A stretch of DNA of 64,000 nucleotides, taken from contig CAJFCJ010000043.1 of assembly GCA_904063045.1 (NCBI GenBank), forward strand, positions 65,581 to 129,580. Reading direction: 5' to 3'. Source of the stretch: Dimorphilus gyrociliatus. Taxonomy: Eukaryota; Animalia; Annelida. The position numbers were made by a program, and so were the translations under genes. Shown piece after piece: positions 15,312-55,800 of this stretch; positions within the stretch are counted from its first letter, which is position 1, and each line of letters starts with the position of its first letter. The notes below the pieces were generated by a model. The model was not told where the DNA came from. It searched no databases and saw only the letters and a list, made by a program, of their open reading frames with translations.

Positions 15312-17066
15312 TTAATTTTTGACAAACTGAATAAATTTTGTTATTAGAAAATCTAAAAATTCAATAAGTGTTAAGACTGTTGCACCAAGAACTAATCCAA
15401 AAGCACCTCCAATATCTGATAAGAGTGCTAACCATGTATAGACTGGTCTGTCTGCGATCTCTTCCGAAAGCATTGACGAATAGAAAATATTTACAGCAAC
15501 CAGATCGTCGGGAATATATCCACTCAGATTAGTCATTCTCTTCACATTTTCCTTATAATTGTCCATAAATTTTGAGGAGGAGATTGTTGTATGAAATTGC
15601 AGATTATGACATTGACCTTCACAATGACATTGTGAAAATATTTCATCTCCGAAATAATGAATTGCATTCTCCTGAATGCATAGAAGATTGAAAGGTGAAC
15701 AGATGACAGACTTTTCGCTACCTTTCATACCAGGGGCTATACATTTACAAGTGTTTTCCATAAAATTTGTAAAGCATTGCCTTGAGCAATGGCTAAATCT
15801 ATAGTTAATATCCTCATTACAATTTCCATATGGATCACTTAGAAAGTTGGTCATTTTTAAAGTTGTTGATAGAAAATATTCATTACCATAAGTCACCTTG
15901 ACACTCTTCTCCAACATTTCTGGAGTATCCTTGGAATCATGAATTAAAATCTGTTTTTTATTATTCATTATTTGGCATTTTCTTTTTTTTATATATAAAC
16001 ATACTTACCCTAAATCCTGCTGACAATGAACTTGTTATTAAGTAATCCTTCTTTCTAGTGTTTAGTAAGACCTTTAAACCATTGGCAGCTCCTGCTGATT
16101 TTATAACCTTATCAGATTCTATAAACAATAAAAAAAAATTGTCAGTATTAGTTGTGTGTAGATGAAATCCTTGTCTGCCTAAAAGTGGCTGTCCTTTGAC
16201 ACTTAGAAACATATATTCATCAGGATGAAAGGTCCACGAATGATGGATTTTACCCCAAAAAGATTAAGTAACCGTTAAGAAATTCACCGGAATTGAATTG
16301 AAAACATCCACCCATATTCGTTTGAACCAGGGAGAAATTTCCTCCATTACAAGGTTGTTGTTTGAATGAACACTACTCACAAAAGAAAAAAACAAACTAT
16401 TAATTTTTCTTTTGATAAACAAAACGAAAATAAATATTTACATAGAAAATGGCGTTATCTATTTGTTGACCCAATTTTTTATACACTTGACCCCAATCCC
16501 AATACGAATTATTAGATAGAAATTTAGTTTCGTCACTAATTTCAAGTTTATTTTTTATCTTTTGTTCTCCATTGATAAATTTAGAAATCAGATTTTCCAT
16601 ATCTGTCAATAGGATATTGATTGAATAATTATTTTTTTATCATTTTCACTCTAACTCATGCCCCTCTCTCTCTCTTCCACATCTGTGGATTGAACTTACC
16701 TTTTGTTGTTGGATTTGGGCGGAAGTATCTATTTTCATTGCAAATAGTTATAGTTGGAAACTTAAGTTCTGAATTAGATATGATTTTAATTTCAGAAACT
16801 GTTTTATATTTTAAGAAGAAAGAGATACGATCGTGTAGTTGATAAATCATAAATCCAAATCCGAAAAGTACCAATAACAGCCAGATAAATCTCTTTAACA
16901 ATGAATTTTCATTGTTCCCTATATATTTTATTCCAATCATACTGATATTTTCGCAAAGATTTTTCCAATTCGTCTTCGAACCATAATGTATTTCTATCAC
17001 TTCCGGTGTTGTTATTTTACCTTTTTCATTGAATTCTTTAACTGTATTTGATAAATCACTTTCCAT
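15312..17066 (-). CDS. DEG/ENaC (ASIC-like) cation channel subunit, 5 exons
   Basis: TM1 KRFIWLLLVLFGFGFMIYQ, FPTITICN, CSFKQQPC...NF...TNMGGCFQFNSG, GLKVLLN, GFR|ILIH, Cys-rich thumb, TM2 LLSDIGGAFGLVLGATVLTLIEFLDF. Introns at 16699-16603, from 16441, near 16270-16210 and near 16005-15950. Confidence 0.95.
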
Positions 17067-25266: not shown

Positions 25267-25460
25267 TGTACTGCTCTATTTATGCATTTGCAAGTTACAA
25301 GAACAGTGGTTCTACTCGAACGAGTAGATGGATGGCTTCGGTGGAGGTTGTTTCAAGGTTATCTTCCCAAGTCCTTGTGTCCAGATAGGAAGATGGTTAG
25401 AATGAAAATAGTGAGGATTTATATACTTCGAGGTTTGCCTCTGATATCCAATCATCACTG
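25267..25460 (-). repeat. Left inverted copy (deletion derivative) of the LTR-like repeat at 29105-29707
   Basis: Its reverse complement matches 29164-29295 and 29362-29500 (agtgatgattggat.tcagaggcaaacct...ccatccatctactc), joined directly to the match with 29643-29707 (gttcgagtagaacca...gagcagtaca). Confidence 0.88.
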
Positions 25461-25614
25461 ATGTTGAAATATTGATAAACAACTGTTGAAACCTTTCACG
25501 TTGCTTAGCGTGTCAAATGAAGTGAAAAGATTATCTATAGAAGGAAATTCTCTCTATCCAGATATATTCGAATCTAAAAAGTCTAACAATTTAAATATCA
25601 GCAAGAAAATCTTA

Positions 25615-28584
25615 TCAGTAGATAATAAGTTTTCTACGGCAAACATGACAAACAATTTTGTCTCTATCACACTTTTTTAAATAAGTCTTTATACATTTAA
25701 TGTGAAATGAATGAGAACATGTCAACTCGACGTAGTGCAAACCATTTTCAGCTCGAGAACAAATAGAACATTTCTGCTTAAAGTCTTCGAATACGTAGAT
25801 AATTCTATTGATCTTGGCTTTAAATATAGAAAATGAATGTTCAAAGTCCATTTTGAAAGTGTTTGAATATTTCTTTTCAAGAATCGTCTTAACTTTTTTG
25901 GATGGTTCGGAATCGTAAGAAATTGATTCATTATTCATTATTTCAATCATTTCGATTTCCGGTAAGCAAAACATGTTATATTGTTGAAAATATTGGTAGA
26001 GTAGTGCCAAATTTTCTTTAATATCTTTTCCAAATAGTATGGAATACGGTATACCGCAGCACAAACAGGAAGAGTCCATTTTATGGAGTTCTTCAAGCAG
26101 ACAACTCATACAAAAAAAATGTTTAAATTTCACTTCGACCGACCGATTCGGTAGAATCTTCTTACCGCAACAACACCGTTTATCCTCAACACCATTACCC
26201 GAATAAATTATTCTTTTAACAAAAACTTTAATATTTTCTTGAGGGAAATGTATACTATGCGCAGAATTATTTTCTATCATTTTCACAAATTCCAACGAAG
26301 GATTTGAAGAGTAATATAATCTTTCTAATTCCGAGATAGGATAACAATTTTCAATTAACACCATTGAATCATTCGATAAGCAATGTAATTTGAATTTTTT
26401 AAATATTTCGTAAAGTAAATATAATCCTTTTGAAAGTTTTGTTGAACAGATGATATCTGGTGGTATTACGCAACAGCAACAGGATCTATAGACGCCGGCT
26501 TCCGGTATCCACGGTAAACATGTTATGCAATAGTAATGGTTGAATGATAATTTAGCAGTTTCACTTGGTTTTAGTAGTTTATTGCAGAGAGTGCAACTGT
26601 TTCCCAGTGAACTAGATAGGTAAACTATCTTATGAATGTTAATAAATCTTTCATTTGGAAAAGAACCAACAGACCAGACCAATTCTGTATTTTCCTCTAA
26701 TCTTGACTTGAATTTATTAACACTGCTTGATTCGTTCAGAACAGAATTTATAAATTCAAGACCTAATTTAGAAGCAACATTTTCCATATGTTTTTCAGGT
26801 AAGTAATACATTTCGTAACGTTTAAATAATCCATACAAATTCTCCAAAATCTTTGAAAGCTTCCTTCTTCCAAAGATGACTTTGAGCGGCAAATTACAAC
26901 AATTACAACTCTCATCTATCTTCTTAGAATCTTCTTTTAAACACGTCAAACAATAGTAATGTTGAATTGCTAATTCAACTGAATGATTTGATTTGATATT
27001 GTTTCTGCATTTTGAACATTTATGACCTTTTGAACTTGTTTGAAGATAGATAAACTTTTTAACTGCAACTGCATATTTGGTTAGACCACTCTCTTCAAGT
27101 GTGACGTTAATCTGCGAATTCATCTCTGATAATATTTTCAACTGTTTAACATCTGTTTTGTGTTGATAACGAAATATTGAATTCAAAAGTTCAGTAGTGA
27201 TTTTGGAAGATATACTTTTTAATTTATTGTTGGGAAGACAAAACATCTTTTGACTATTAAATATAGTCTTCAAGACGAATGTCTTATAATCAATGTCATT
27301 TTCTTTCCGTTTTGAGGTCAAATATACAGCGAGAGTTACGTAGAGATAATGTTCACACGGTAAGAAATTTACTGAAAACTGACTCCATTTACGCTTAGAT
27401 CTTTTAAATTTAATTAGAGCAATAAATATATGTATTGCGTAATTTGCAATTTGAGCCAAAAACAATAGGATTGGATACCAGAAAATTGAATAGAGCAAAC
27501 CGGAAGTAAATATTATAAAGATAATCCAATTTAAAACACCATTAATATATAGGTCTTTATCAGTAAAGAATAGAATATAAATGAGTAATACAAAAATATC
27601 AGTATTAATCCAAATCATCATATCTGAACTATGGGAAAAATTCAAATGATAAGAGCTATTTCGAAATGTTGCCATATAAAATAGACATAGAAATATTATT
27701 AAAAAAGAAATATTTGATGAAAATTTGTCAAGAAAATCCAATTTTGTCATATCTATAAATGATGAATTTAAAATTGATAATAGGCTGAAGAGTAGTATCA
27801 AACAATAAAATGAATGTAACATAGGTTCTCCTTTTATGATGTATTGACTTCCTTCATTTGGAAAATATCTTTGCAGTTCAATCTCATCCAAATTTCCATC
27901 ATTTACATTTATTATTACGTAATCGTAATAAAATGGATTTATTCCTTTAAAATTGAATTTAACTTTCGAAATAGTTTCCTTAGAAATGTAGAATGATTTC
28001 GTACCAGTTTTTTTTAAAATATTAAAAAACTGGTCCTTCGTTCTAAGTTCAGAGTAATTCAATTTGAATAGAATAATATTTAGCCAATGTCTTAATGACA
28101 AAGTTGCATTCTTCATATAAGAATTAACGAATATTGGTCTCTGGCCTGTGAAATTTAAAAACACACCAATTTGCGGTTGTTTCAATTGTATTTTACTGCA
28201 AAAAATCGTATTGTACTCATCGTCTTGGCAATCCGCTTCTCTTAATTTATATTTTTCATTCATATCCATTGATATTAATTCTCTCCATTCATCTTCTAAA
28301 GAATTGTCCAGTTTTTCACCAAATTCAAATTTTACTATAACAATCGATTGGGCTTTTTCTAAAAACTCTTGATATTTCGAGTGGAAAGAATATTTTAAAC
28401 TAATTTTTGAAATGTAATTTTTCAAATCTGTAACAGAAATATCGCCACTGTCTTCTTCTTCTTCGTCAATCATTCCCAAATCTCTTTTAAATATCTTTTC
28501 TCTTGAAATTTTAACAGAACTCATATTAAAATACATTGCTGCTATTGAGTAAATGCCGAAAAATATTACTGCTTTCGTCGCCAT
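25615..28584 (-). CDS. Intronless 989-aa membrane protein: signal/anchor, luminal domain, about 5 TM helices, four tandem ~140-aa units each ending in a RING-like finger (putative E3 ubiquitin ligase)
   Basis: Uninterrupted 2970-bp ORF from AAAATGGCG. The last finger CSIC...CSHSFHIKCI...CHVC is a canonical RING-H2. Three earlier fingers (CSKC..HYYCLTC..CNCC; CTLC..HYYCITC..CCCC; CCCG..HFFCMSC..CLCC) share spacing and flanking motifs (LY..F..Y.MFCLP; K/RIIY). Confidence 0.9.
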   Translation of the reverse strand: MATKAVIFFGIYSIAAMYFNMSSVKISREKIFKRDLGMIDEEEEDSGDISVTDLKNYISKISLKYSFHSKYQEFLEKAQSIVIVKFEFGEKLDNSLEDEWRELISMDMNEKYKLREADCQDDEYNTIFCSKIQLKQPQIGVFLNFTGQRPIFVNSYMKNATLSLRHWLNIILFKLNYSELRTKDQFFNILKKTGTKSFYISKETISKVKFNFKGINPFYYDYVIINVNDGNLDEIELQRYFPNEGSQYIIKGEPMLHSFYCLILLFSLLSILNSSFIDMTKLDFLDKFSSNISFLIIFLCLFYMATFRNSSYHLNFSHSSDMMIWINTDIFVLLIYILFFTDKDLYINGVLNWIIFIIFTSGLLYSIFWYPILLFLAQIANYAIHIFIALIKFKRSKRKWSQFSVNFLPCEHYLYVTLAVYLTSKRKENDIDYKTFVLKTIFNSQKMFCLPNNKLKSISSKITTELLNSIFRYQHKTDVKQLKILSEMNSQINVTLEESGLTKYAVAVKKFIYLQTSSKGHKCSKCRNNIKSNHSVELAIQHYYCLTCLKEDSKKIDESCNCCNLPLKVIFGRRKLSKILENLYGLFKRYEMYYLPEKHMENVASKLGLEFINSVLNESSSVNKFKSRLEENTELVWSVGSFPNERFINIHKIVYLSSSLGNSCTLCNKLLKPSETAKLSFNHYYCITCLPWIPEAGVYRSCCCCVIPPDIICSTKLSKGLYLLYEIFKKFKLHCLSNDSMVLIENCYPISELERLYYSSNPSLEFVKMIENNSAHSIHFPQENIKVFVKRIIYSGNGVEDKRCCCGKKILPNRSVEVKFKHFFCMSCLLEELHKMDSSCLCCGIPYSILFGKDIKENLALLYQYFQQYNMFCLPEIEMIEIMNNESISYDSEPSKKVKTILEKKYSNTFKMDFEHSFSIFKAKINRIIYVFEDFKQKCSICSRAENGLHYVELTCSHSFHIKCIKTYLKKCDRDKIVCHVCRRKLIIY

Positions 28585-29104
28585 TTTTAACGCAGACCGA
28601 AATAGAAAATAGGAAATTAGCCACTGAAGATTTTTAGAACAAATAACCAGTCAAAGTGGTTATAATGTTTTTTTAAAAGAAATAGTGAACTATATGGGAC
28701 AGATGGAGCCACTGTCGAATATCATTTATATCTATTTGAATTGCAGCTAGGCAACATCTATGGCTTTTTCAATGATGGTTAATTCAAATAAATCCATATA
28801 ATCCTTATTTAATTGTTATTTTTTTCTCTATTCAATTAAATTTCAATGCTGATTGGTTAAAAATTATAAACTAGAAACTCTTGTTATTGTACAACTATGG
28901 TTATATTTTACATGCTTATTTATTATTATATATTTATCTATTATTTGATGCAACTTATACATGTACATCTTAAAACCTACACAAGAAAATGCTATAACAT
29001 TGGCCAAACATAAGTCTTATTAGTCAGCTTGAAGGCTCATCTTTAATCACCAATAAAGGTTTGGCCAAGTTATAATTCAATTAACCTTCCTAATTGTTCA
29101 ACCT

Positions 29105-29707
29105 TGTAACATCCTGTTACTAAAGATAAATATGAACTACACATTTTGGCAACTGTAAAGTGATGATTGGATGTCAGAGGCAAACCTCAAAGTCTATAAA
29201 TCCTCATTATTCTCATTTGGCATGCAGCTTCCATCTGGACCCAAGGACCTGGGAAAATCATCTGGAAACAACCTCCACTGGAACCATCCATCTACTCCTC
29301 AACATTGGAAGACGGTTTGGTAATTTGGCAACCTGCTATTACAAACTATTACAACAACTGTAAAGTGATGATTGGATGTCAGAGGCAAACCTAAAAGTCT
29401 ATAAATCCTCTTTATTCTCATTCTGCACATAGCTTCCATCTAGACCCAAGGACTTGAGAAGATAACCTGGAAACAACCTCAACTGGAACCATCCATCTAC
29501 TCCTCAACACTGGAAGACAGTTTGGTAATTTGGCAACCTGCTATTACAAACTATCTACTCTGCTATTAAACTCTCATATTGTTACTTGCTTAAGTATTAT
29601 TATTGCGAATAAACCATTTTATTTTAAACATTTGTTTAAAAGGTTCGAGTAGAACCAGTATTGTTATAACTTACAAATGCATAGATTTTGCCAGCAAGAG
29701 CAGTACA
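29105..29707 (+). mobile_element. LTR-like repeat with an internal 205-bp tandem duplication (29150-29354 / 29355-29553)
   Basis: The tandem duplication is directly visible. The region starts tgtaaca, carries tataaat and aataaa, and has ...aaaca at 29631. No TSD or PBS found, so the LTR call is tentative. Confidence 0.55.
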
Positions 29708-30820
29708 ATGATATTCTCATCAATATTTTGTATATCTTAAAAATTTTGTGTGAAAGTCTCCAGATAAATGGTTGTTGTTTTCAACTGTAGGCATAACTTC
29801 GTCAGCTTTATTCAACAACAAATAAAAAAATAGTTGCTACAGCCATAATGAAATAATTTTTAATATGACTGTTACATTGGAAGGATAGCAATAACATCAA
29901 ACAATTCTAAACATAGATTATAATACATTTTTCCTCACTTATACATACTTTTCAAATGGATATAAAATATAGTTAACAAAGCAGACATAAAATTCAATGA
30001 TCTAGTTATAAAAAAATTAATTAGGTCATACAACTTTTTTCCTAATTAGTCACATTTCATTATGTAATCTATTTGAATCAGTTCTTGGACATATTCAGTT
30101 TGAATAGGAACAAAAAAAAACAAACACAATACAATATTTTTAAGTTTGCATATAAAAAACAAACAAAAAACTCTAAAGTCTTTATTTTAAAAGGCATTCT
30201 TATTAACTTTTAACTGTTGTAATCTTTTTCTCAAAAGTAATCCAAATTCTAGAATATTTCTTCTATCTTGTTTTAATGATGTAACAATATCAAAACTGAA
30301 TGGCTTGAATGAATGCTGAAAATAATTTAGGTTTATTTTGCACAAAAAACAAATATAAAGCAAAAGTTTACTATTTTTAAGAGAACTGCATCAACACTGT
30401 CTTTAAAACATATCTCGTTTTCATGGTATTTCATTAATAGTTTACTTATGTATAGGCTGAATCCTAACAAATTCTCTATGCAATCTAGTTCTCTTCCATA
30501 GTATTTGCATAATGGAAGTTTTTCAAGAAAAATCTGACTTATTTCTTCAGTTTGTTCCATCATACAATGAAATGATTAGTTGATGGTGGTTGTTTAATTT
30601 ATTGAAAACAAACCTGGTACCACTTTCCTTTCAATTAATGCTAATTTCATATTTAATCTAGAAAGAGTACAAATTCATAACAATGATAAAATACAATAGC
30701 ATATTAATGTATCTGCATCTGCAAAATTCTGTGACAGTTCACAAAAAAACTGGCTAACTAATTAGGATAAACTGCCAAAAAATTCTTATCCAGACACTAA
30801 TTTATTATTTAAAATATATT

Positions 30821-33800
30821 CTACCTCCATTTTTGTTTTCTTCTAGAAATAAATGAAATTATTGATATATTTGAATGAAATGGTAAATTTAAAAATGAAA
30901 ATAATAGACAACAAACAACGGAAAATTGTTTATCAATATTTTGAAAAGTTTCAATAAAGTAAAAAGTTATAATAAAGACATGAAAAAAAACTACCATACA
31001 AAAGCTCTTCAATAATTCATAATTTGTTTCATAGTGACTATGATAGCCTTTAGTTGAGCTATTCACAGACTTTAACCTCAGTACTATTTGAAGGCCTAGA
31101 GAAGATATTGTGCAAACTGAACAAGAAAATAGAAACACATAATAAAAGTAATAATCATTATGATAGACATTCAGAGTGATTAAAGGATTGCAGAAAGGAA
31201 ACCAAAAGTAATTATCCTCTTTCTTTATTAAAAAGTAAGAAAAACAATTAAATTCTTTAATGAGATTAGATAACATTCTATTTACATAAAGAATTATAAA
31301 CTTGATTGTAAACCCTAACAAAACAGCCAATGAAAATGACTGGAAGAGAAGAAATTTTTCAATCATTTTCTCTTTTATCACCATTTGCCAAATGATTGAA
31401 AAGAATCTATGAAAAATATTAAAAATTAAAGAGATGTATAAGAAAACTGTAAATGTAAAACAATTCCAAATTGGTGAAAAATCATCTTTTTTGTAAAATT
31501 CATGAACAAAATTTTTCTTTTTAAATAGTCCTATTATTTTGAAAATGTATAAAAGTATAATCAGATCATTGGCAATTGCAAGTGAATATCTTAAATAGAA
31601 TGAAAATTTTGGTATTCTCCTCTCAATTATAAGCAATATGTATAAAAGTAAATATAAGAAAATAATAATTATATAGAATATAAATAATATTGAAACTTGA
31701 TATTCTAAACTTTTTCCATCTTCTTCAGTTAAACATAATTTTAAAATTGTTATGTTGTGTAAACAATTCAATTTTTTAAATTTTTTAAATAATTTCAACT
31801 GGCAACAAATAATATTGTCATCAACATACAATTCTGCCAAGTTTACCAGTTGATTTTTTGTTAGAAAAACTCTCCAATTTTCATTGGCAATAAATGCTTG
31901 GCGAAAATCCAAATATGTTAATAGACCAAAATATTTTGGAAAATGTAAATTTTTAATTTCACTAATTCTATTAAAACTTATATTGAGCTCTATCAGATTG
32001 TTCATATTTTCAAACATGTTAAAATCTATATAAGATAGTAAATTCTTTGAAAAGTCAATATATCTTAAATCTTTTAGAGTAGTTAGAGATTCTTTATTGA
32101 TTTCTCCTATAGAATTTCTTCTTAAAATCAAAGTTTGTAAATGAATTGGAAATGAAATATTTAATGAGCTTTTCTTATTCAATTTATCATATTCAAATTT
32201 GATATCAATCAATTTCAACACAATTAGATTGTTAAACAATTTTAAATAGATATTTTGAAAGTTACTGTCAATTCGTCCATTTTGAATAATTAGACTGGTT
32301 ACTGAATGCATTTTGTGTTGGTGGTTAGAAAATGCAAACTCATTCAAGCGTAGCAGAAATACTGATTTAAATGTTTGAATCTGAGTCAATTCGCTAAATG
32401 AAAATCTGGATTTTCTACAATGAATTTTATGGGAGAAGAGACAATTACAATCTGGTAGGCAGGTAACATTTGAACAATATAGTTCATCAATTCCATTTGG
32501 ACAGTTGTTAATACCATCACAAAGTTCAATGAGGTTGATGAATAATTTCTTTGGTTTACAAGAGAAAAATCCCTTAGGTTTAAAGCTATCTGTTTTGTTG
32601 TACAGCAAGAAGGCTTTAGCAATTTTTTCATTTGCAAAATGAAGGAAGGGAATAGAGTTTAAAATTTGAAACTATCCAAAATGTTATGTTTTTTAAAATA
32701 AAACCAATTCCCTTCCTTCCACACTTAGGCCTTCTATTTCTTACCACAATTCAGTTCATCATCTCCTAGTGGACAGTGTTTTAACTCATCACAAACCAAT
32801 CTGATATCAATGCAATATTGATATTCTTTACATCTGTATTGATTAAATAGACATTTCTTTTGAATATTACAATTTAGATGTCCTTCCTCATGTTTTAAAG
32901 GATAAGATACTAATCTTTCCATACTGTCATATTTTATCTCACATATTTCACTAAAAAATAAAAATCATTTTTGAAAGGATTTATCTTAGTGATAAGAAAA
33001 ATTTTAAACCTATTAATTTTACTAAAATCTTTAATATTCAAATCAATTTTGAATAATTTAAAATCACTAAATGATTCATTTTTGCATATTTGCCTTCTTT
33101 CATCACTGAAATCAATGCAATTTCTTTCATTATCGCAAAATTTCACTTCTGCAATACATTGATAATTTTCACATTGTCTACAAAAAGGGAATATTTTGGA
33201 ATTGTGGAAAAATTTCGGAATTTTTTGAGAAATTTTCAGAATTTATCACACCTTTCACCTTTGCTTTGATTACAAATTGGAAAATCTGGAAAAAATAATT
33301 GATTTTGTTTTGAAAACACTCATTGAGAATTTTTGGAAGAGTTTTACGGCAAAATTCTTCATCCGAATAATCGTTGCAATCATCAATAAAATCACAAACA
33401 AATGTTGAAGAGATGATTAGGGAATTTTTACAAATGAAATAATTAATATTTAAGCAATTTGTCTCATCAGAATTGTCTCCGCAATCATCGATTCCGTTGC
33501 ATATATATCTACTATTGATACAGATTGATAGATCTCTACAAAAGAAGCTATTGCGACTAGTGCATTCCATTATGATATTTAAAATTGGGTCATGTTGAAT
33601 TTTTATAAATTCATTTTCTAAGTGGAAAATTTTTAAGTATATTTTACCAAATATTTTGAATACAAACTGGTATATAATGATTTTTCACAAATAACATAAC
33701 TCATACCCAAAACATTATCACAAGGGCTGACAGTAAAAGTTACTAAATCATTATCACCCTCTTCCAATACCAGGCAGATGTAGTCATCATTGGTAAAATA

Positions 33801-37307: not shown

Positions 37308-40300
37308 TTACTTGTATTTGATCATTTTTATATTCCATAGATACTTAATATTCATTTGAGAATAGATTAAAGGATTAACAATAGAGTTTACTGATAAAAA
37401 GATAATAAATGCCCAAATATACGTATCGTGTGTCAAAATACTCTTTTCAAAACACGCCATAAGACCTTAATAAAATTTTGAAATAGTTTGACAAACAAAG
37501 ATTAAGGGATTAAAAGATTAAAAGATTAACAAACTAAAATAGGATAATGGAAACCAAGTAAAGAAATTTGACATGACAATTATTGCTCCAATTTTAATGA
37601 CTTTTTGAATTCTCTTATTCTGTTCAATTCCTGATAAAATGAAACTCTGTTTTTTGATAAAGTAAATAATATTGCAGTAAAAAAATGTAATTATTGCGCA
37701 ATTTATTGACGTGAAAACTGCAAAAATAAAAAATGAATATAACCATCCATCAGATTTTTCATTAGTTAAATTTAAAGTAAAACATATAGGATATCTTGCA
37801 TAGTATGACTGAAAAGATAAGAAGAGATTGTTGTCATTACTTTAAAGTTACTGTTTTAATGAGAATAGAGTACATTAAATGCAAAATAGGGTAATAATGA
37901 CAAAATGAATGCAATTAATATAGAAATAGCAATAATGATTATTGATTGGAGTTTTGTAAAATCAACAAACTTTAATCCATTTTTTACCATAGAAAACTTT
38001 TGATATGTAATTATGAAGACAGTGATTTGTGATAAAATTGATGAGAAACTGGCCAATAATCCAGCAATTGTACATAATCCGCTATTTTTCCATTCTTCTG
38101 CCCCTTCGATAAAACTACTGGAAATCAATCTATCCTTTACTCCTATTATTATGAAATAAATGCTAAAGGTAAGATCTGAAATATAGAGTAATAGTTGAAA
38201 TCTGTGAATGCTCTTCTTCAAACTCTTTATTGATGTTACTAGACAAAATGTATTCAAAAAGAGACTAATTATTGAAAAACTATTCGCAAAGACTGAAAAT
38301 GTTAATAGTAATTATACTTTTATTTTTTTTAAATTGGACATTTCCAATTGACCTACTTTTTAAAAAATTTGAATTAATTATCTCTCCACATGAATTTTGT
38401 TGCAATAATTTTGGTAAACATTCTTCTAATTGAAAATTATTGACAAAACAACAATATTTGAATTTATCAGATATTAATCTCTTTAGTGACAATACATTGC
38501 TAAACATTTTCCTGACAGGATCTTTCAATTTAAATTCAACATTCTTCATATGGAATTCTTGTAAATTTTCCAAATTTTTCAAACATTCTTCGCATAGTTC
38601 AAATATTTTCGAATTTGAAATATTTAAATATTTTAATTGAATTGAATTATTGAATAAAAGCCGAGAGACATTTTGAAAGTTATAAAATCTTATTGTTAAC
38701 CTTAAAAGTGAACTTTTAAAAACATTGCCAGTAATCTCAGATATTCTACTATCTATTAGAATGATATGTTGAAGAATATTTAAATTTTTAAAAGTGTTTG
38801 AATTTAGGGAGCGAATATTATTTTTAGTAAAATTAACAACAACAATATTTGAAAGAATTTTCACAAAATGAATATTTGTAATATTTCCATTAACAATAAC
38901 CAATTTAGTTGTATTGGCACTGAGTAATAGTTGAAGAGTTTGTAATGCTGAAAAATTGAATAGTTCTACTATTTTCCATGTATATTTTGTATTGTCTTTT
39001 ATAAAAGTATTGTTTATTGCTTTCCAACAGTAGATTTTTATAAATTGATTACAATAGCAATTTATAGGACAAACAATTTTTTCAATATTTTTATCTTTAT
39101 TATCCATTAGAGGGCAACTAATCATATTTCCAATCCATTCTAAACTGTCGAACATATTATAGAATCGACATTTAAACATATTCTTTGCAAAAAAAACATC
39201 TTTAAAATTTTTAATTTTGTTTTTTTTTTAAAAAAAAAGTTTGAATATACTCTAATATCTAATATACAAACATTTATCACAATTTTCTTCATCTTCACCA
39301 AATATACATTGCGTAATACCATCGCATACGAGGCTGCTGGGAATACAATACCCAAGTTCGCTTAAAGGCTTTTGCAGAATGATTAAGGCAAAAAATTAAA
39401 AAGAAAACAGTTATTTTATTATCATCTTTATTACATTTGTTCTGCATAAGAAAAGGTTTATTTTTTGATTGCATTTATTTTCACATAGAGATGGTTGGTA
39501 TCCATAATAAGAATTTTTATCTTTAAACATATGAAATGTATGGAAGTCATCACAAGCTGAGAAAAGGGAAGAAAATATTTAATTTATATTTTATTGCTCT
39601 ATCATTTATTTTATGGATATTTTTGTCACACCATTGTAAGAGTCTACTTGCGATTTTACTGAATCTGCAGCAATGGAAGAAAAACAAAACAATAGAATAA
39701 TAATGATAACTAGGATAGTAAAGTTTCATCTTCTTTCTGCAATACTTACATGGAACGATTACAGAGAAATAAGAATTTGATTGTGGAGGGCTCAATACCA
39801 ATTTAAGGGCATGTTTTCTCGATTCATCATCATTTTTATCCCGTAAATCCAAGATAGTCTTTTCATTTTTTGAAATTTCAGATTTACAATAGGTCAAATA
39901 ATCTCCTTTCTGCGTATCAACGCAAATTAAGCGTGCCTCCTCCTTTATAGTTGCATAGATATAATTTTCTATTTCAATAGATAAAATAATTGGAAAATGA
40001 ATGATAAAAAAATAGAGTTTTTTAAGCCTATATAACATATTTTACTTCTCTGTGCAAAATAATCACAATAATCCAGACACTGGTAACTCAAATGGTTAGT
40101 ACTATATATGACGCATTGACCACTTTGGCATCTCCTGAAAATGATAGAGAATTGGCAAAATTTTAAACCAATTTCTATACTTACTGTTCATTTTTTTTAC
40201 ACTTTTTGAAATCTATTTTTTGCAGTTTTTATAAATTTTTTCAAATTATTGATAATCCATTTAATATTGAAAAAAATTTGTTTTTTTCAAAACTTACTAC

Positions 40301-52805: not shown

Positions 52806-55800
52806 TTACTTAATAAGTAGAATGAAGACATGTAATTGAACAATTAACCTCTTTCTAGCAGATTTGACCTTAACTTCTGTAATGGTATTTGTTATCTCTT
52901 GAAAAGACAAGATATAGGGATTTATAATTGAACTTAGAGGTAAAATTGTAACCATTATCCATTCAAATTCATAAATTTCCACTGGAACTTTTGAAAATAG
53001 AATTAAAAATCCTAAATAACAAATAATTAATCATTTTCTATAAAGTTTTTTTATATGTGTTTTTTTTGACACCTAAAAGAGAGACAGTTGTCCAAGTTAA
53101 CATATGACTAACAGTGAAAATAACAACATTCATGTTAACACTTCTTTGATTAGACAACTTTCGAAATTTTTTAAATGACCCCTTTATTATACTGATAAAT
53201 TCACAAGTTAAATAAAACATAAAGATGCTTAACAAAGGCAAAATGATGCAAAATATGATAAATTGATAAATAAAATATACAGTTGAATTTTCCAAGTTGA
53301 GTATTGAGAAACATTTTCTGTCATTTTCCTGACAAAAAAACTCTTGAATATAAACAAAAATGTACCAAAAAAGTATTAGAAACTAATTACTTTGTGAAAA
53401 AAAAATGCAATCATTGATAAAACCAGACAGAATATGAATGAAATTGCAATAAATATGCATTTAAATATCCAAGATTTATGCTTCTCCATTGGGTACTTTA
53501 CCACTCTATTTCTTTCTACTGTTATGAATAGAATACCAGTAGAGGATAAGAGTAGGGAAGAGAAGAGTGTGATTTGCAAAACTTGACAGAAAACACTTTT
53601 GACCCAGGTGATATCATTTTCTAAGTATGAATTTCCATAATAGAGGTCAACAATGGAGATTGATATCATATAGAAAGATATGCACAAGTCAGAAAAACTT
53701 AGTAGTTGTTTAAAATGTTTGGAGGAACTTTTTGCCCTTAAAAGTAAAATTGTTGAAAGAATATTCCCTAAACAACCAAACACTCCATTAAGCCAATAAA
53801 AAACTATTTTACTTTTTGAATGAATAAGCCTTGTACATTGTGGATAGTTGAGTAGTTTGCCTGCTGAACAATTGACATTTTTACCAAGGTATTTTATAGA
53901 AAGACAGCAAATTTTTGAATTGCTTGTATAGATTTTAGGCACTTTAACCATATCTATAAAAACTCTTGCAATTTCAAAATGAGAGATAATTGTATAAGGA
54001 ATAATTAATTTTTTTATTTCAAGTAAATAGGTAAAACTTCCATCTTCTATTGAGTGAATAAAACAACCTTTTATAATGAATATTTGTAATTGTCTTATCA
54101 GATTAAGGTGTAATTTTGATAGTATTGTTATATTTGTATATGATATATCCAAATAATTCAAATGGCTACATTTTAAATGATATAGAAATGATAAAGATTG
54201 AATTGGATTATAGGAAATTATCAATTTTTGAAGTAGTTTTAATTTTTTTCTTAGAATTATATTATCATTTTCACCTACTAATCCATTTTCAGTTAATGAC
54301 AAACTTACTACATTTGGAATAGTAATATTCAAATTTTTAGTCAGGAATCTGTTACTTTTTCTGATAATTAAGATTGTTAAATGAGTAAAAGTTGTATGAA
54401 AAAGTTTGTTTTTTTTGGCAAATTCCCAGTAATATTTAATTTTCTTATACTTTCTATATGTTTAAATTTTAAACTGTTATTGTTTGGCTGTTGTTTCTCA
54501 ACTATTACATTATCCACAAATGCTTTGAAGTGACAATTGAATGAAAATGTGGAAATTTCAATACAACCAGGAAAATTTATTATTGGAATTTTACATAAAA
54601 GCTCATCACTTCCATCAAGACATTCAACAATTCCATTGCATATTTGATACATAGTCAAAAAACGTCTTTGACTTGAACACATAAAAAATCCTTTGGGTAA
54701 AAATTTCCTAAAAGTAAATGTAATTAGATCTATATAATATGTTGCTCTTTTTTCTTTTCTGTTTACCACAATCAACTTCATCATCACCTTGAGGACATTG
54801 GTTAAATCCATCACAAATAAGATCAAGAGAAATGCAATAAGCTTCTCTATAGCAAAGGTATTGGCCATAAGAACAAGATTTTTTAGAACAGGATTCTGAG
54901 AAATTTGGCTTTAATTCACTTAATACATATCCTAAGGATTATGTTGTAACAAAACATTTTGCTATTTTCCTATAAGGTGTATTTGACAATAATTTATTGC
55001 ATTGCAGAATTTCATATTGAAAATTTATATAAGGAACACAAAATGCAAAGCATTCTTTTTGAATATCATTTCGACAGGCTAAATCTTAAATGAAAAAAAA
55101 GGCATTGTAAAAAATTCATTTCTAATTTTTTTTTAAAACCATATTTATATTCTTTTAAAATTGAATTTGAGTTAAAGCATAACTCATCACTTTTATCAAA
55201 ACAGTCAACTTCATTATTGCAAACTTTGTCTTTATTAATGCATTGTCCATTTTTGCATTGTCTAAAAGAGATAAATTATCAGATACCATTCAATAAGTAA
55301 TTAAATCACTGTACACTTCATTTTCAGAACATTTGGGGAAAGCTGAGAAAGAATTTTTTCTATGGATTATAAGCCTTAGATTATAGGAAGAGAACAGAGA
55401 GACAGAGAGAGAGAGACAAAAATTCTTTGTTGGTTTCATCACATAATACTTGAAAGGTGAGATCATTCTTCACTTTTAATCTAACTAACACACCCACATC
55501 TTACTATGAGATGAAACAACTAAAAGACTGAAATCTTCTTAAACAGTCTGTCAGGGAATATGACTATCAACAAACCACAATATTCTTCATCTGAACCATC
55601 AGGACAATCTATCCAAAAGTTACAAACACTTAAATAACTAATAAATTTGTTTCCTGAATGGCATTTGAATATGTGTGTTAATTCAGTATGGCAATATTTT
55701 GAATATTCCTTATTTGTTCTACAATCAATGAGATTTTTGCACAAATGAATCTTATTCAAGAAAATATTAAAGTTTTCACATTTTACAAAATTTTCAGGAA

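Follow-up and report, generated by a model that had tools for sequence, protein, structure and literature searches.

An unannotated gene of Dimorphilus gyrociliatus for a putative RNF103-like membrane RING ubiquitin ligase with four tandem finger modules

The window analysed here, a stretch of 64,000 nucleotides from contig CAJFCJ010000043.1 of the annelid Dimorphilus gyrociliatus, a tiny marine worm, contains an unannotated gene of this animal at positions 25615-28584 on the minus strand. Judged from its sequence, the encoded protein is best read as a membrane RING E3. We hold it for somewhat more probable than all other readings taken together that this is a real D. gyrociliatus gene, probably transcribed, whose product is a RING-H2 ubiquitin ligase of RNF103/Kf-1 type that passes the membrane several times and has an amplified module. 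What looks new is an RNF103-like membrane E3 carrying a four-fold finger module of which only the last copy is apparently ligase-competent. The protein belongs to a fast-evolving family that is seen only in D. gyrociliatus and one relative; this genome has some 10-15 of its loci.

The coding sequence (989 amino acids plus stop, 25615..28584, minus strand) is complete and intronless. A single intact open reading frame of 989 codons starts from an ATG, has no internal stops and stays open across the entire match. Because it extends over 989 aa in DNA of 29% GC, a chance origin of the open frame is ruled out. The ORF was identical in all four sequencing runs compared, without any differences. In runs X3 and X4, contigs were found to span 25399-28478 only, with empty unique flanks, and the depth drops from 3' to 5' along the gene. 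These contigs resemble a transcript and the gene is probably transcribed; as both runs carry the label 'DNA?', transcription is read solely from the coverage pattern.

The gene lies in a neighbourhood of LRR and TRIM-LRR ORFs, adjacent to a LYAR gene, and is bordered on both flanks by high-copy repeats. That the gene and these repeats form a mobile unit of the family, a cassette between inverted repeats, was considered and rejected, the arms being copies of a high-copy interspersed repeat; the flanking repeat was absent next to those paralogues that were fetched. The exact full-length protein was not found in the public protein collection searched, from which four full-length paralogues are also missing and in which two further family loci are present as fragments only. 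This points to an incomplete annotation of the small repeat-rich contigs of D. gyrociliatus.

The overall anatomy described in the earlier note, namely a luminal domain of about 235 aa, about five transmembrane helices and four repeats of about 140 aa, was recovered by Kyte-Doolittle hydropathy, by the AF2 model and by four HMM domains. A hydrophobic segment at aa 5-20 (28525..28572, minus strand), visible in the sequence and modelled as a helix by AF2, may be a signal peptide or a signal anchor. Five hydrophobic helices occupy aa ~256-396 (27397..27819, minus strand); in addition to the stretch at aa 5-20, the Kyte-Doolittle profile places them at ~258-278, 290-308, 322-342, 349-369 and 370-392, and the helices of the AF2 model coincide with these positions.

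Between the N-terminal segment and the helices lies a luminal domain of ~235 aa with a core at aa 77-177 (28054..28356, minus strand), modelled by AF2 with a pLDDT of 70-78 and the order beta-alpha-beta-alpha-beta-beta-alpha. Beyond aa 77-177 the N-terminal model is weak (mean pLDDT 47.9), and the remaining luminal region, aa 178-255 (27820..28053, minus strand), has a pLDDT mostly below 50 and is, at low confidence, a possible second beta-alpha-beta unit. When compared by VIA-align, many thioredoxins matched the core with Z scores of 6-7.9 across 85-97 residues, and a shape search of the ESM Atlas with the luminal region returned Trx-fold families only. Residues 1-442 were nearest by features to OST3/OST6 and MagT1/TUSC3 clusters (0.81, a lead-level score only), and the luminal neighbours are ER-resident, including PDI, DNAJC10/16, OST3/6 and RNF103. 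The luminal domain is thus predicted, from these models, to adopt a thioredoxin-like fold without CxxC, as in ER-resident proteins. The CxxC active site is not present at the start of helix 2, where the pair C119...C129 (C-x9-C) is found instead, and this cysteine pair is kept across the family alignment as C-x6-9-C. At the sequence level, a profile of the N-terminal half had no match among PDB sequences, and Pfam identified no domain in the N-terminal half of any family member.

Charge and glycosylation features give a self-consistent topology, in which the N-terminal domain would be luminal and the fingers cytosolic. The loop 309-321 has no K/R and carries two N-glycosylation sequons, and a K/R-rich stretch directly past the last helix (five K/R in 393-415) marks the tail as cytosolic; the number of helices, five, likewise puts the fingers on the cytosolic side. 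The protein presumably resides in the ER.

The tail is built of four modules, all on the minus strand. Module 1 spans aa 443-580 (26845..27258) and combines three helices and a beta hairpin with internal finger 1 (aa 523-563, nt 26896-27018); it was delimited by HMM, zinc ligands, AF2 and Foldseek. HMM and ligands define module 2 (aa 587-721, 26422..26826) with finger 2 (aa 664-705, nt 26470-26595) and module 3 (aa 729-862, 25999..26400) with finger 3 (aa 804-843, nt 26056-26175). Module 4 (aa 866-989, 25618..25989), supported by Pfam, HMM and ligands, contains the RING-H2 finger at aa 939-982 (nt 25639-25770). An HMM built from the modules of the paralogues, with the 989-aa protein itself left out, found exactly four domains at 443-575 (1.2e-25), 587-715 (2.5e-22), 729-858 (4.6e-21) and 866-986 (2.6e-12). 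The fingers start at C523, C664, C805 and C939, with a period of 141 aa. Pairwise identity among the four modules is 20-30%, and BLASTP of the protein against itself detected no internal repeat, from which it follows that the repeats are old and diverged.

As the earlier note had read from the letters, the full C3H2C3 set is confined to the last finger, whose ligands are complete from C939 to C982 (C939-x2-C942-x13-C956-x-H958-x2-H961-x2-C964-x14-C979-x2-C982). The eight-ligand order C-x2-C-x(9-39)-C-x(1-3)-H-x(2-3)-H-x2-C-x(4-48)-C-x2-C occurs in finger 4 only. In this finger, Ile941 lies between C1 and C2, and the linchpin position is taken by Arg983. Its match to zf-RING_2 reaches 22.5 bits, under the Pfam gathering cut-off of 27.3. 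When finger 4 (aa 920-989) was modelled together with a UBE2D-like E2 whose intronless gene lies in the same genome (L055:1471-1923:-), the complex score was 0.00, which gives no answer either way.

The hydrophobic third ligand and the CxCC end that had been noted in fingers 1-3 were likewise found, as I540, F681 and F820 on the one hand and C-N-C-C, C-C-C-C and C-L-C-C on the other. Ligand 5 is a cysteine in these fingers, and the first pair of finger 3 is irregular, with CCC at 804-806 and not C-x2-C. Between C1 and C2, fingers 1-3 have a Lys, a Leu and the irregular pair, respectively. The residue past the last Cys is N, V or G, hence no positive linchpin, and where active RING-H2 fingers have Trp or another aromatic residue in the helix, fingers 1-3 have D, I or E. 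Full E2-contact features, that is the hydrophobic contact together with the linchpin, are confined to terminal fingers.

A sequence profile made from 14 modules, of which 11 carry internal-type fingers, matched 123 PDB sequences at E <1, all of them RING domains, the best being RMR1 (1.6e-6) followed by the EHV-1 RING, Arkadia, RNF165, AMFR, RNF13 and HRD1. In the AF2 model of module 1 the pLDDT is 80-90 across the finger, with the strand-strand-helix order seen in RING. The top Foldseek matches of this model were nearly all RINGs, but with E values of 0.07-0.4, and VIA gave the internal finger a Z of at most 4, C1 domains scoring about equal to RINGs.

The derived internal pattern reads C-x2-C ... 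hydrophobic-x-H-x2-C-x2-C ... C-x-C-C-x-[IV]-P. The 10 complete internal fingers, drawn from four paralogues, all retain H4, C5, C6, C7, the extra Cys and C8 at an overall identity of ~25%, and the two fingers without H4 are also without CxCC. By this alignment, the internal fingers form a conserved type and are not the product of decay. RINGs that lack E2-contact features are typically inactive, and the importance of these features has been described (PMC11992055). The internal fingers, whose shared type lacks E2-contact residues, are in consequence probably pseudo-RINGs, and the proposal that fingers 1-3 act as non-catalytic binding units fits their sequence, since the E2-contact residue and the linchpin are lost. 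A tree of the modules with the finger columns removed gave no resolution, which leaves unsupported the idea that the internal finger type arose once. A tentative and rather doubtful extension would be that the internal fingers are an undescribed RING subtype, in which the lost Cys3 of zinc site 2 is replaced by an extra Cys beside ligand 8 (H + CxCC), and that three to five pseudo-RINGs pack on the one active RING as an intramolecular assembly at the cytosolic face of a membrane ligase and govern its E2 choice, chain type or oligomer state. Such an arrangement, if true, would be the equivalent within one chain of the Pex2/10/12 RING tower or of the BRCA1-BARD1 pairing.

Paralogues with the same N-terminal/TM block were found on contigs C206, C77, C97, C45 (two) and C19 (profile E 1e-65 to 1e-139). 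Some of them, of 550-580 aa, are single-finger proteins in which a thioredoxin-like domain in the lumen is followed by TM helices, a helical linker and the C-terminal RING-H2. At least five modules occur in one paralogue, the C97 paralogue has lost its terminal RING, and broken family copies lie on C94, C57 and C35. The Pfam RING cut-off is passed by the C19 single-finger paralogue (35.7 bits) and by DgyrCDS11817 (29.6 bits), a distant family member. Identity to the relative is 37% for the family, whereas LYAR next to it reaches 82%. When the full protein, the C19 paralogue and DgyrCDS11817 were used in word-based protein searches, each returned only the query itself. An exhaustive profile search of 1.84 billion representatives gave 26 matches at E <1e-3, among which P0001, P0002, P0003 and P0024 are family members; the others matched the finger part of the profile only, and the four that were read are ordinary RING-finger proteins. 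HMMER found no relatives beyond dinophilids. A cluster of 500-aa ORFs on C5 and several matches of the module profile were set aside as N-terminal-RING, TRIM-like proteins that are not part of the family.

The earlier note had known of no family with such a layout. This has to be revised, as the single-finger paralogues share the build and a link to RNF103/Kf-1 emerged via DgyrCDS11817. The family profile aligned with this protein by hhalign (95.6%, E 1e-8) and by tblastn (E 1e-11). In the ESM Atlas, the RNF103 cluster is the nearest to DgyrCDS11817 for features (0.93, 190/256 shared) as well as for structure (TM 0.50 over 321 aa). The link runs via DgyrCDS11817 and a language-model and structure neighbour list, not via a direct RNF103 alignment, and no RNF103 orthologue was retrieved by HMMER and word searches. 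RNF103/Kf-1 is an E3 of the ER and binds Derlin-1 and VCP (PMC4021871).

We infer both the E3 activity of the protein and the roles of its internal fingers. An N-terminal signal or anchor would be followed by a lumen-facing thioredoxin-like domain without CxxC, five TM helices and a cytosolic tail. The ancestral tail may have been one module (a RING-H2 joined to three helices and a beta hairpin), of the kind that survives in the 550-580-aa paralogues, and in the subgroup of the 989-aa protein the helix-plus-finger module would have been copied in tandem, here to four copies. Finger 4, with its full ligands, C1-C2 hydrophobic residue and linchpin Arg, would recruit and activate E2~ubiquitin. 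In the internal fingers, zinc site 1 appears intact and the extra Cys of CxCC may stand in for the Cys3 lost from site 2; the internal fingers would serve as scaffold, pairing or docking units of RING fold that are non-catalytic.

Several other explanations bear on the same observations. All four fingers could be working RINGs, with CxCC restoring zinc site 2, so that each recruits its own E2 in a multivalent ligase that builds chains processively. The joint retention or loss of H4 and CxCC speaks for a site 2 that still holds zinc, and both the confident model of an internal finger with RING topology and the Leu at the E2-contact position of finger 2 go in the same direction. However, none of fingers 1-3 has a positive linchpin (N, V, G), finger 1 has a Lys at the hydrophobic E2-contact position, the aromatic helix position is D, I, E, and RINGs without such features are typically inactive (PMC11992055), which makes this explanation unlikely. 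It is very unlikely that the fingers have nothing to do with ubiquitin and serve to bind lipids or proteins as zinc modules of cross-brace or treble-clef type, such as C1-like domains. C1 domains do occur among the structure matches at Z 3.2-3.7, near the RING scores, but at E <1 the sequence profile matched RING domains only (123 PDB sequences, best 1.6e-6), ligand order and spacing are of RING type and not of C1 type, and the terminal copy is a textbook RING-H2.

The earlier note had proposed a receptor-like E3 with a luminal sensor that drives ubiquitination; in the version weighed here, such a protein would sit at the cell surface, and its extracellular domain would sense a ligand and switch on ubiquitination. 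Very fast evolution (37% identity in a relative versus 82% for LYAR), local expansion and the LRR and TRIM-LRR surroundings are traits common in recognition genes; nevertheless, the predicted luminal fold is thioredoxin-like without CxxC and its nearest neighbours are ER-resident, no sign of surface location or ligand binding was seen, and nothing supports a luminal sensor. This receptor is improbable. The gene could also be a decaying or functionless lineage-specific duplicate, its ORF in repeat-rich DNA still open by luck. This would agree with the absence of the full-length protein from the public protein collection and from the matches of two sequence searches, with the high-copy repeats at the flanks, with the broken copies on C94, C57 and C35 and with the C97 paralogue devoid of a terminal RING. 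Against such a decay, 989 codons are free of stops at 29% GC, every ligand position of the derived pattern is intact, the ORF is unchanged in four runs and the X3/X4 coverage is transcript-like, so that we regard it as quite improbable.

If the reading as an RNF103-like membrane ligase holds, tandem duplication has united an active RING and inactive partner RINGs in one membrane protein. It would also mean that the poorly studied ER ligases of RNF103/Kf-1 type can expand and diversify fast in one animal lineage, and such rapid expansion is usually tied to recognition or conflict. The variant finger has a defined, conserved signature that is open to testing for zinc content and pairing.

Among known systems, OST3/OST6 and MagT1/TUSC3 also place a thioredoxin domain in the lumen ahead of four TM helices, but they have no RING and carry the CxxC active site that is absent from the worm protein. 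PA-TM-RING proteins (RNF13, plant RMR1) likewise combine a domain in the lumen with a membrane anchor and a RING-H2 on the cytosolic side. However, they rely on a PA domain and one TM helix, in contrast to the thioredoxin-like domain and five helices found here, and Pfam detected no PA domain match in the worm protein. Mind bomb (MIB1/MIB2) resembles it by several C-terminal RING fingers in series, the last of which carries the ligase activity. Yet Mind bomb is a soluble protein unrelated in sequence to the worm protein, and its RINGs have full ligand sets and lie outside any 140-aa helix-plus-finger repeats.

As regards the internal fingers, BARD1, MDMX, PCGF/BMI1 and the TRIM pseudoligases are likewise RING folds without E2-activating features, and in Pex12 it is a zinc site that has been lost (PMC11992055). 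Such inactive partner RINGs support or regulate an active RING by pairing (PMC11992055). By analogy, a partner-RING role is the most likely one for fingers 1-3. The known inactive partner RINGs are separate polypeptides, whereas the worm family has three to five in the same chain as the active finger, with their own ligand pattern (Cys3 lost, His5 replaced by Cys, CxCC-x-[IV]-P).

The closest likeness in build is to RNF103/Kf-1, in which an N-terminal hydrophobic anchor, a luminal thioredoxin-like region, membrane helices, a cytosolic linker and a C-terminal RING-H2 come in the same order, and which has a conserved Cys pair in place of CxxC in its luminal region. It differs in having one RING versus four RING-like modules in the worm protein, and the worm family, unlike RNF103/Kf-1, is as far as visible restricted to dinophilids and evolves much faster than the adjacent gene.

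The gene at window:25615-28584 on the reverse strand consists of a single open reading frame of 989 codons running from ATG through stop. Since AT-rich sequence has frequent stop codons and the DNA around the gene contains 29% G+C, a frame of this length is no chance event. Hydropathy analysis places an N-terminal hydrophobic segment at residues 5-20 and five hydrophobic helices at about residues 256-396, with which the helices in the AF2 model coincide. Five lysine or arginine residues lie in the stretch behind the fifth helix, and the loop 309-321 contains none of these residues and two N-x-S/T sequons, a placement that fits a predicted luminal N-terminal domain and 590 presumably cytosolic C-terminal residues. 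The protein also contains four modules, numbered from the N-terminal side, whose fingers begin at C523, C664, C805 and C939 with a period of 141 residues. These modules are alignable over their entire length at 20-30% identity and share motifs beyond the finger, such as LYxxFxxYxMxxLP, as well as I-x-Y immediately before it. The internal repeats were not detected by BLASTP self-comparison of the protein; an HMM search, with a model made from paralogue modules only, found exactly four domains (E 1e-25, 3e-22, 5e-21 and 3e-12). The anatomy proposed in the earlier note, an N-terminal domain followed by about five transmembrane helices and four repeats, is thus upheld by the reading frame, the hydropathy, the AF2 helices and the HMM.

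Its account of the finger ligands is also correct: finger 4 has the complete C3H2C3 set, and in fingers 1-3 a hydrophobic residue replaces ligand 3 and the finger terminates in CxCC. In addition, ligand 5 of fingers 1-3 is Cys instead of His, and their CxCC is followed by x-[IV/L]-P. In the 10 complete internal fingers, found in four paralogues, H4, C5, C6, C7, the extra Cys and C8 are retained, and both fingers without H4 have lost CxCC as well. This co-variation suggests that the histidine and CxCC still form a zinc site.

Searched against PDB sequences, a profile built from 14 modules (internal-type fingers in 11) matched RING domains, most strongly the RMR1 RING-H2 (1.6e-6), then EHV-1 RING, Arkadia/RNF165, TRIM5, gp78, RNF13 and HRD1; we take the internal fingers to be RING-derived on this sequence evidence. 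The AF2 model of module 1, built with the 14-module alignment, shows three helices, a beta hairpin and the finger at pLDDT 80-90, with two short strands and a helix positioned as in a RING. Its top Foldseek matches were almost all RINGs with weak E-values (0.07-0.4), and in exhaustive structural comparison neither RINGs nor C1 domains exceeded Z 4. The internal fingers are accordingly regarded, with moderate confidence, as RING-like in fold.

Model quality for the N-terminal half was low overall (mean pLDDT 47.9) but reached 70-78 at residues 77-177. For this segment, structural alignments of 85-97 residues with dozens of thioredoxins score Z 6-7.9, the ER-luminal domains of ERdj5 and ERp46 among them, and the language-model and shape neighbours all belong to thioredoxin-fold families (OST3/6, PDI, DNAJC10/16). 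The CxxC motif is absent from this luminal domain; two Cys separated by 6-9 residues are conserved in the family where CxxC would sit.

Family members were sought in the 77.9-Mb genome of the annelid D. gyrociliatus, the species under which database proteins that match parts of two paralogues exactly are recorded. Other multi-finger genes were found on contig C206 (at least five modules, cut short where the contig stops), C77 (a RING-H2 besides three internal fingers) and C97 (terminal RING lost). Genes with one finger (553-577 aa) occur on C45, as a tandem pair, and on C19, and there are fragments and broken copies as well. All members have the N-terminal domain and helix block in common (profile E 1e-65 to 1e-139). 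The earlier note knew of no family with this layout, a statement contradicted by the single-finger paralogues of the same genome; as these share the block, the four-finger layout elaborates on a one-finger form that persists. The closest paralogue is represented at C94:72112-72746 (L002, L004) by a pseudogene fragment with three stop codons, which shares 66-68% identity with the protein's first 171 aa. By lookup, neither the exact 989-aa sequence nor four other full-length members were found in the public protein collection, and the former was also missing among the hits of two sequence searches; two further loci are represented in it by fragments only (311 and 256 aa). At G000:C5:2533448-2596914 lies a dense array of at least 12 intronless, TRIM-like ORFs, each about 500 aa long and with its RING at the N-terminus; these matched the module profile in its finger region alone and are unrelated to the family. 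The genome also contains an intronless 150-aa UBE2D-like E2 at G000:C7:829446-829856 (L055:1471-1923, reverse strand), which retains the RING-contact motifs F62 and S-P-A and may be a retrocopy, and a UBE2L3-like intronless ORF at C6:1065839-1066252.

One distant member, DgyrCDS11817 (P0024; 496 aa, main scaffold; E 8e-4), emerged from an exhaustive profile search. Hhalign pairs it with the family luminal domain (95.6%, E 1e-8), and in tblastn it aligns with the C19 member over 159 aa (26%, E 1e-11) and again in the RING. Its nearest ESM Atlas cluster is 'E3 ubiquitin-protein ligase RNF103', whether ranked by features (0.93, 190/256 shared) or by predicted structure (TM 0.50 over 321 residues). 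Some sequence motifs of human RNF103 may resemble DgyrCDS11817, a likeness that serves as a lead only. The best available placement goes from the gene through the single-finger paralogues and DgyrCDS11817 to RNF103, the last step being indirect. DgyrCDS11817, with one 47-nt intron, lies in a tandem cluster of RNF103-like genes adjoining a LYAR gene (G000:C19:2163984-2175252; L032, L047, L050, L051, L054, L071). Beside it in the cluster are the single-finger member of 577 aa, a C-terminal piece broken by stops, an open frame of 487 aa and one more copy, encoded on the opposite strand.

In a relative (Logan assemblies SRR23372216, SRR23372228 and SRR23372229), a single-finger member adjoins LYAR as on C19, and run SRR23372229 shows this neighbourhood conserved. 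Between the two species LYAR is 82% identical and family members only 37%, so the family evolves fast, which explains why sequence searches find nothing more distant. A tree built from 18 modules separates the six terminal RING-H2 copies from the twelve internal ones (support 90/94). Without the finger columns the branching between them lacks support, so that one origin of the internal finger type is only compatible with the sequence data.

The gene is flanked by inverted copies of a very abundant interspersed repeat (window 25278-25459 and 28831-29815), within which a 205-nt tandem duplication lies at 29150-29554; hundreds of contigs stack on these copies in every run. Next to the paralogues that were fetched no copy of the repeat was found, and it is therefore counted as background of a repeat-rich contig, outside the gene proper. 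The window looks gene-poor and repeat-rich for a compact genome such as this one. Neighbouring ORFs are animal-like: an amiloride-sensitive sodium channel exon-like ORF at 15312-15968 on the reverse strand (PF00858, E 1e-39) and three LRR ORFs at 30821-32608, 38280-39179 and 53376-54332. Four sequencing runs (X1-X4) reported zero differences within the gene's ORF. The flanks are covered in X1 and X2, as expected of genomic DNA; in X3 and X4 contigs span 25399-28478 only, with none in the unique flanks on either side, and depth declines from the gene's 3' end to its 5' end. This pattern resembles poly(A)-primed RNA and makes transcription probable, and only probable because both runs are labelled 'DNA?'.

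In finger 4, C1 and C2 enclose an Ile, the helix bears an aromatic residue and the last Cys is followed by Arg; through such features active RING-H2 fingers hold and activate E2~Ub. In fingers 1-3 the linchpin position is N, V and G, and the hydrophobic contact of finger 1 is Lys; RINGs altered in this way are usually inactive (PMC11992055). We lean towards an ER-type membrane E3 in which finger 4 would be catalytic and the internal fingers would act as RING-fold scaffold, pairing or docking units. The earlier interpretation is partly supported: the RING-type membrane ligase remains the likeliest reading, and the layout without kin gives way to a family with single-finger paralogues and an indirect link to RNF103. 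RNF103/Kf-1 is a RING-H2 ligase of the ER membrane that binds Derlin-1 and VCP (PMC4021871). The gene appears to encode an RNF103-like membrane RING-H2 ligase with a putative mechanism; what is new here is that such a ligase carries a tandem array of conserved, probable pseudo-RING modules.
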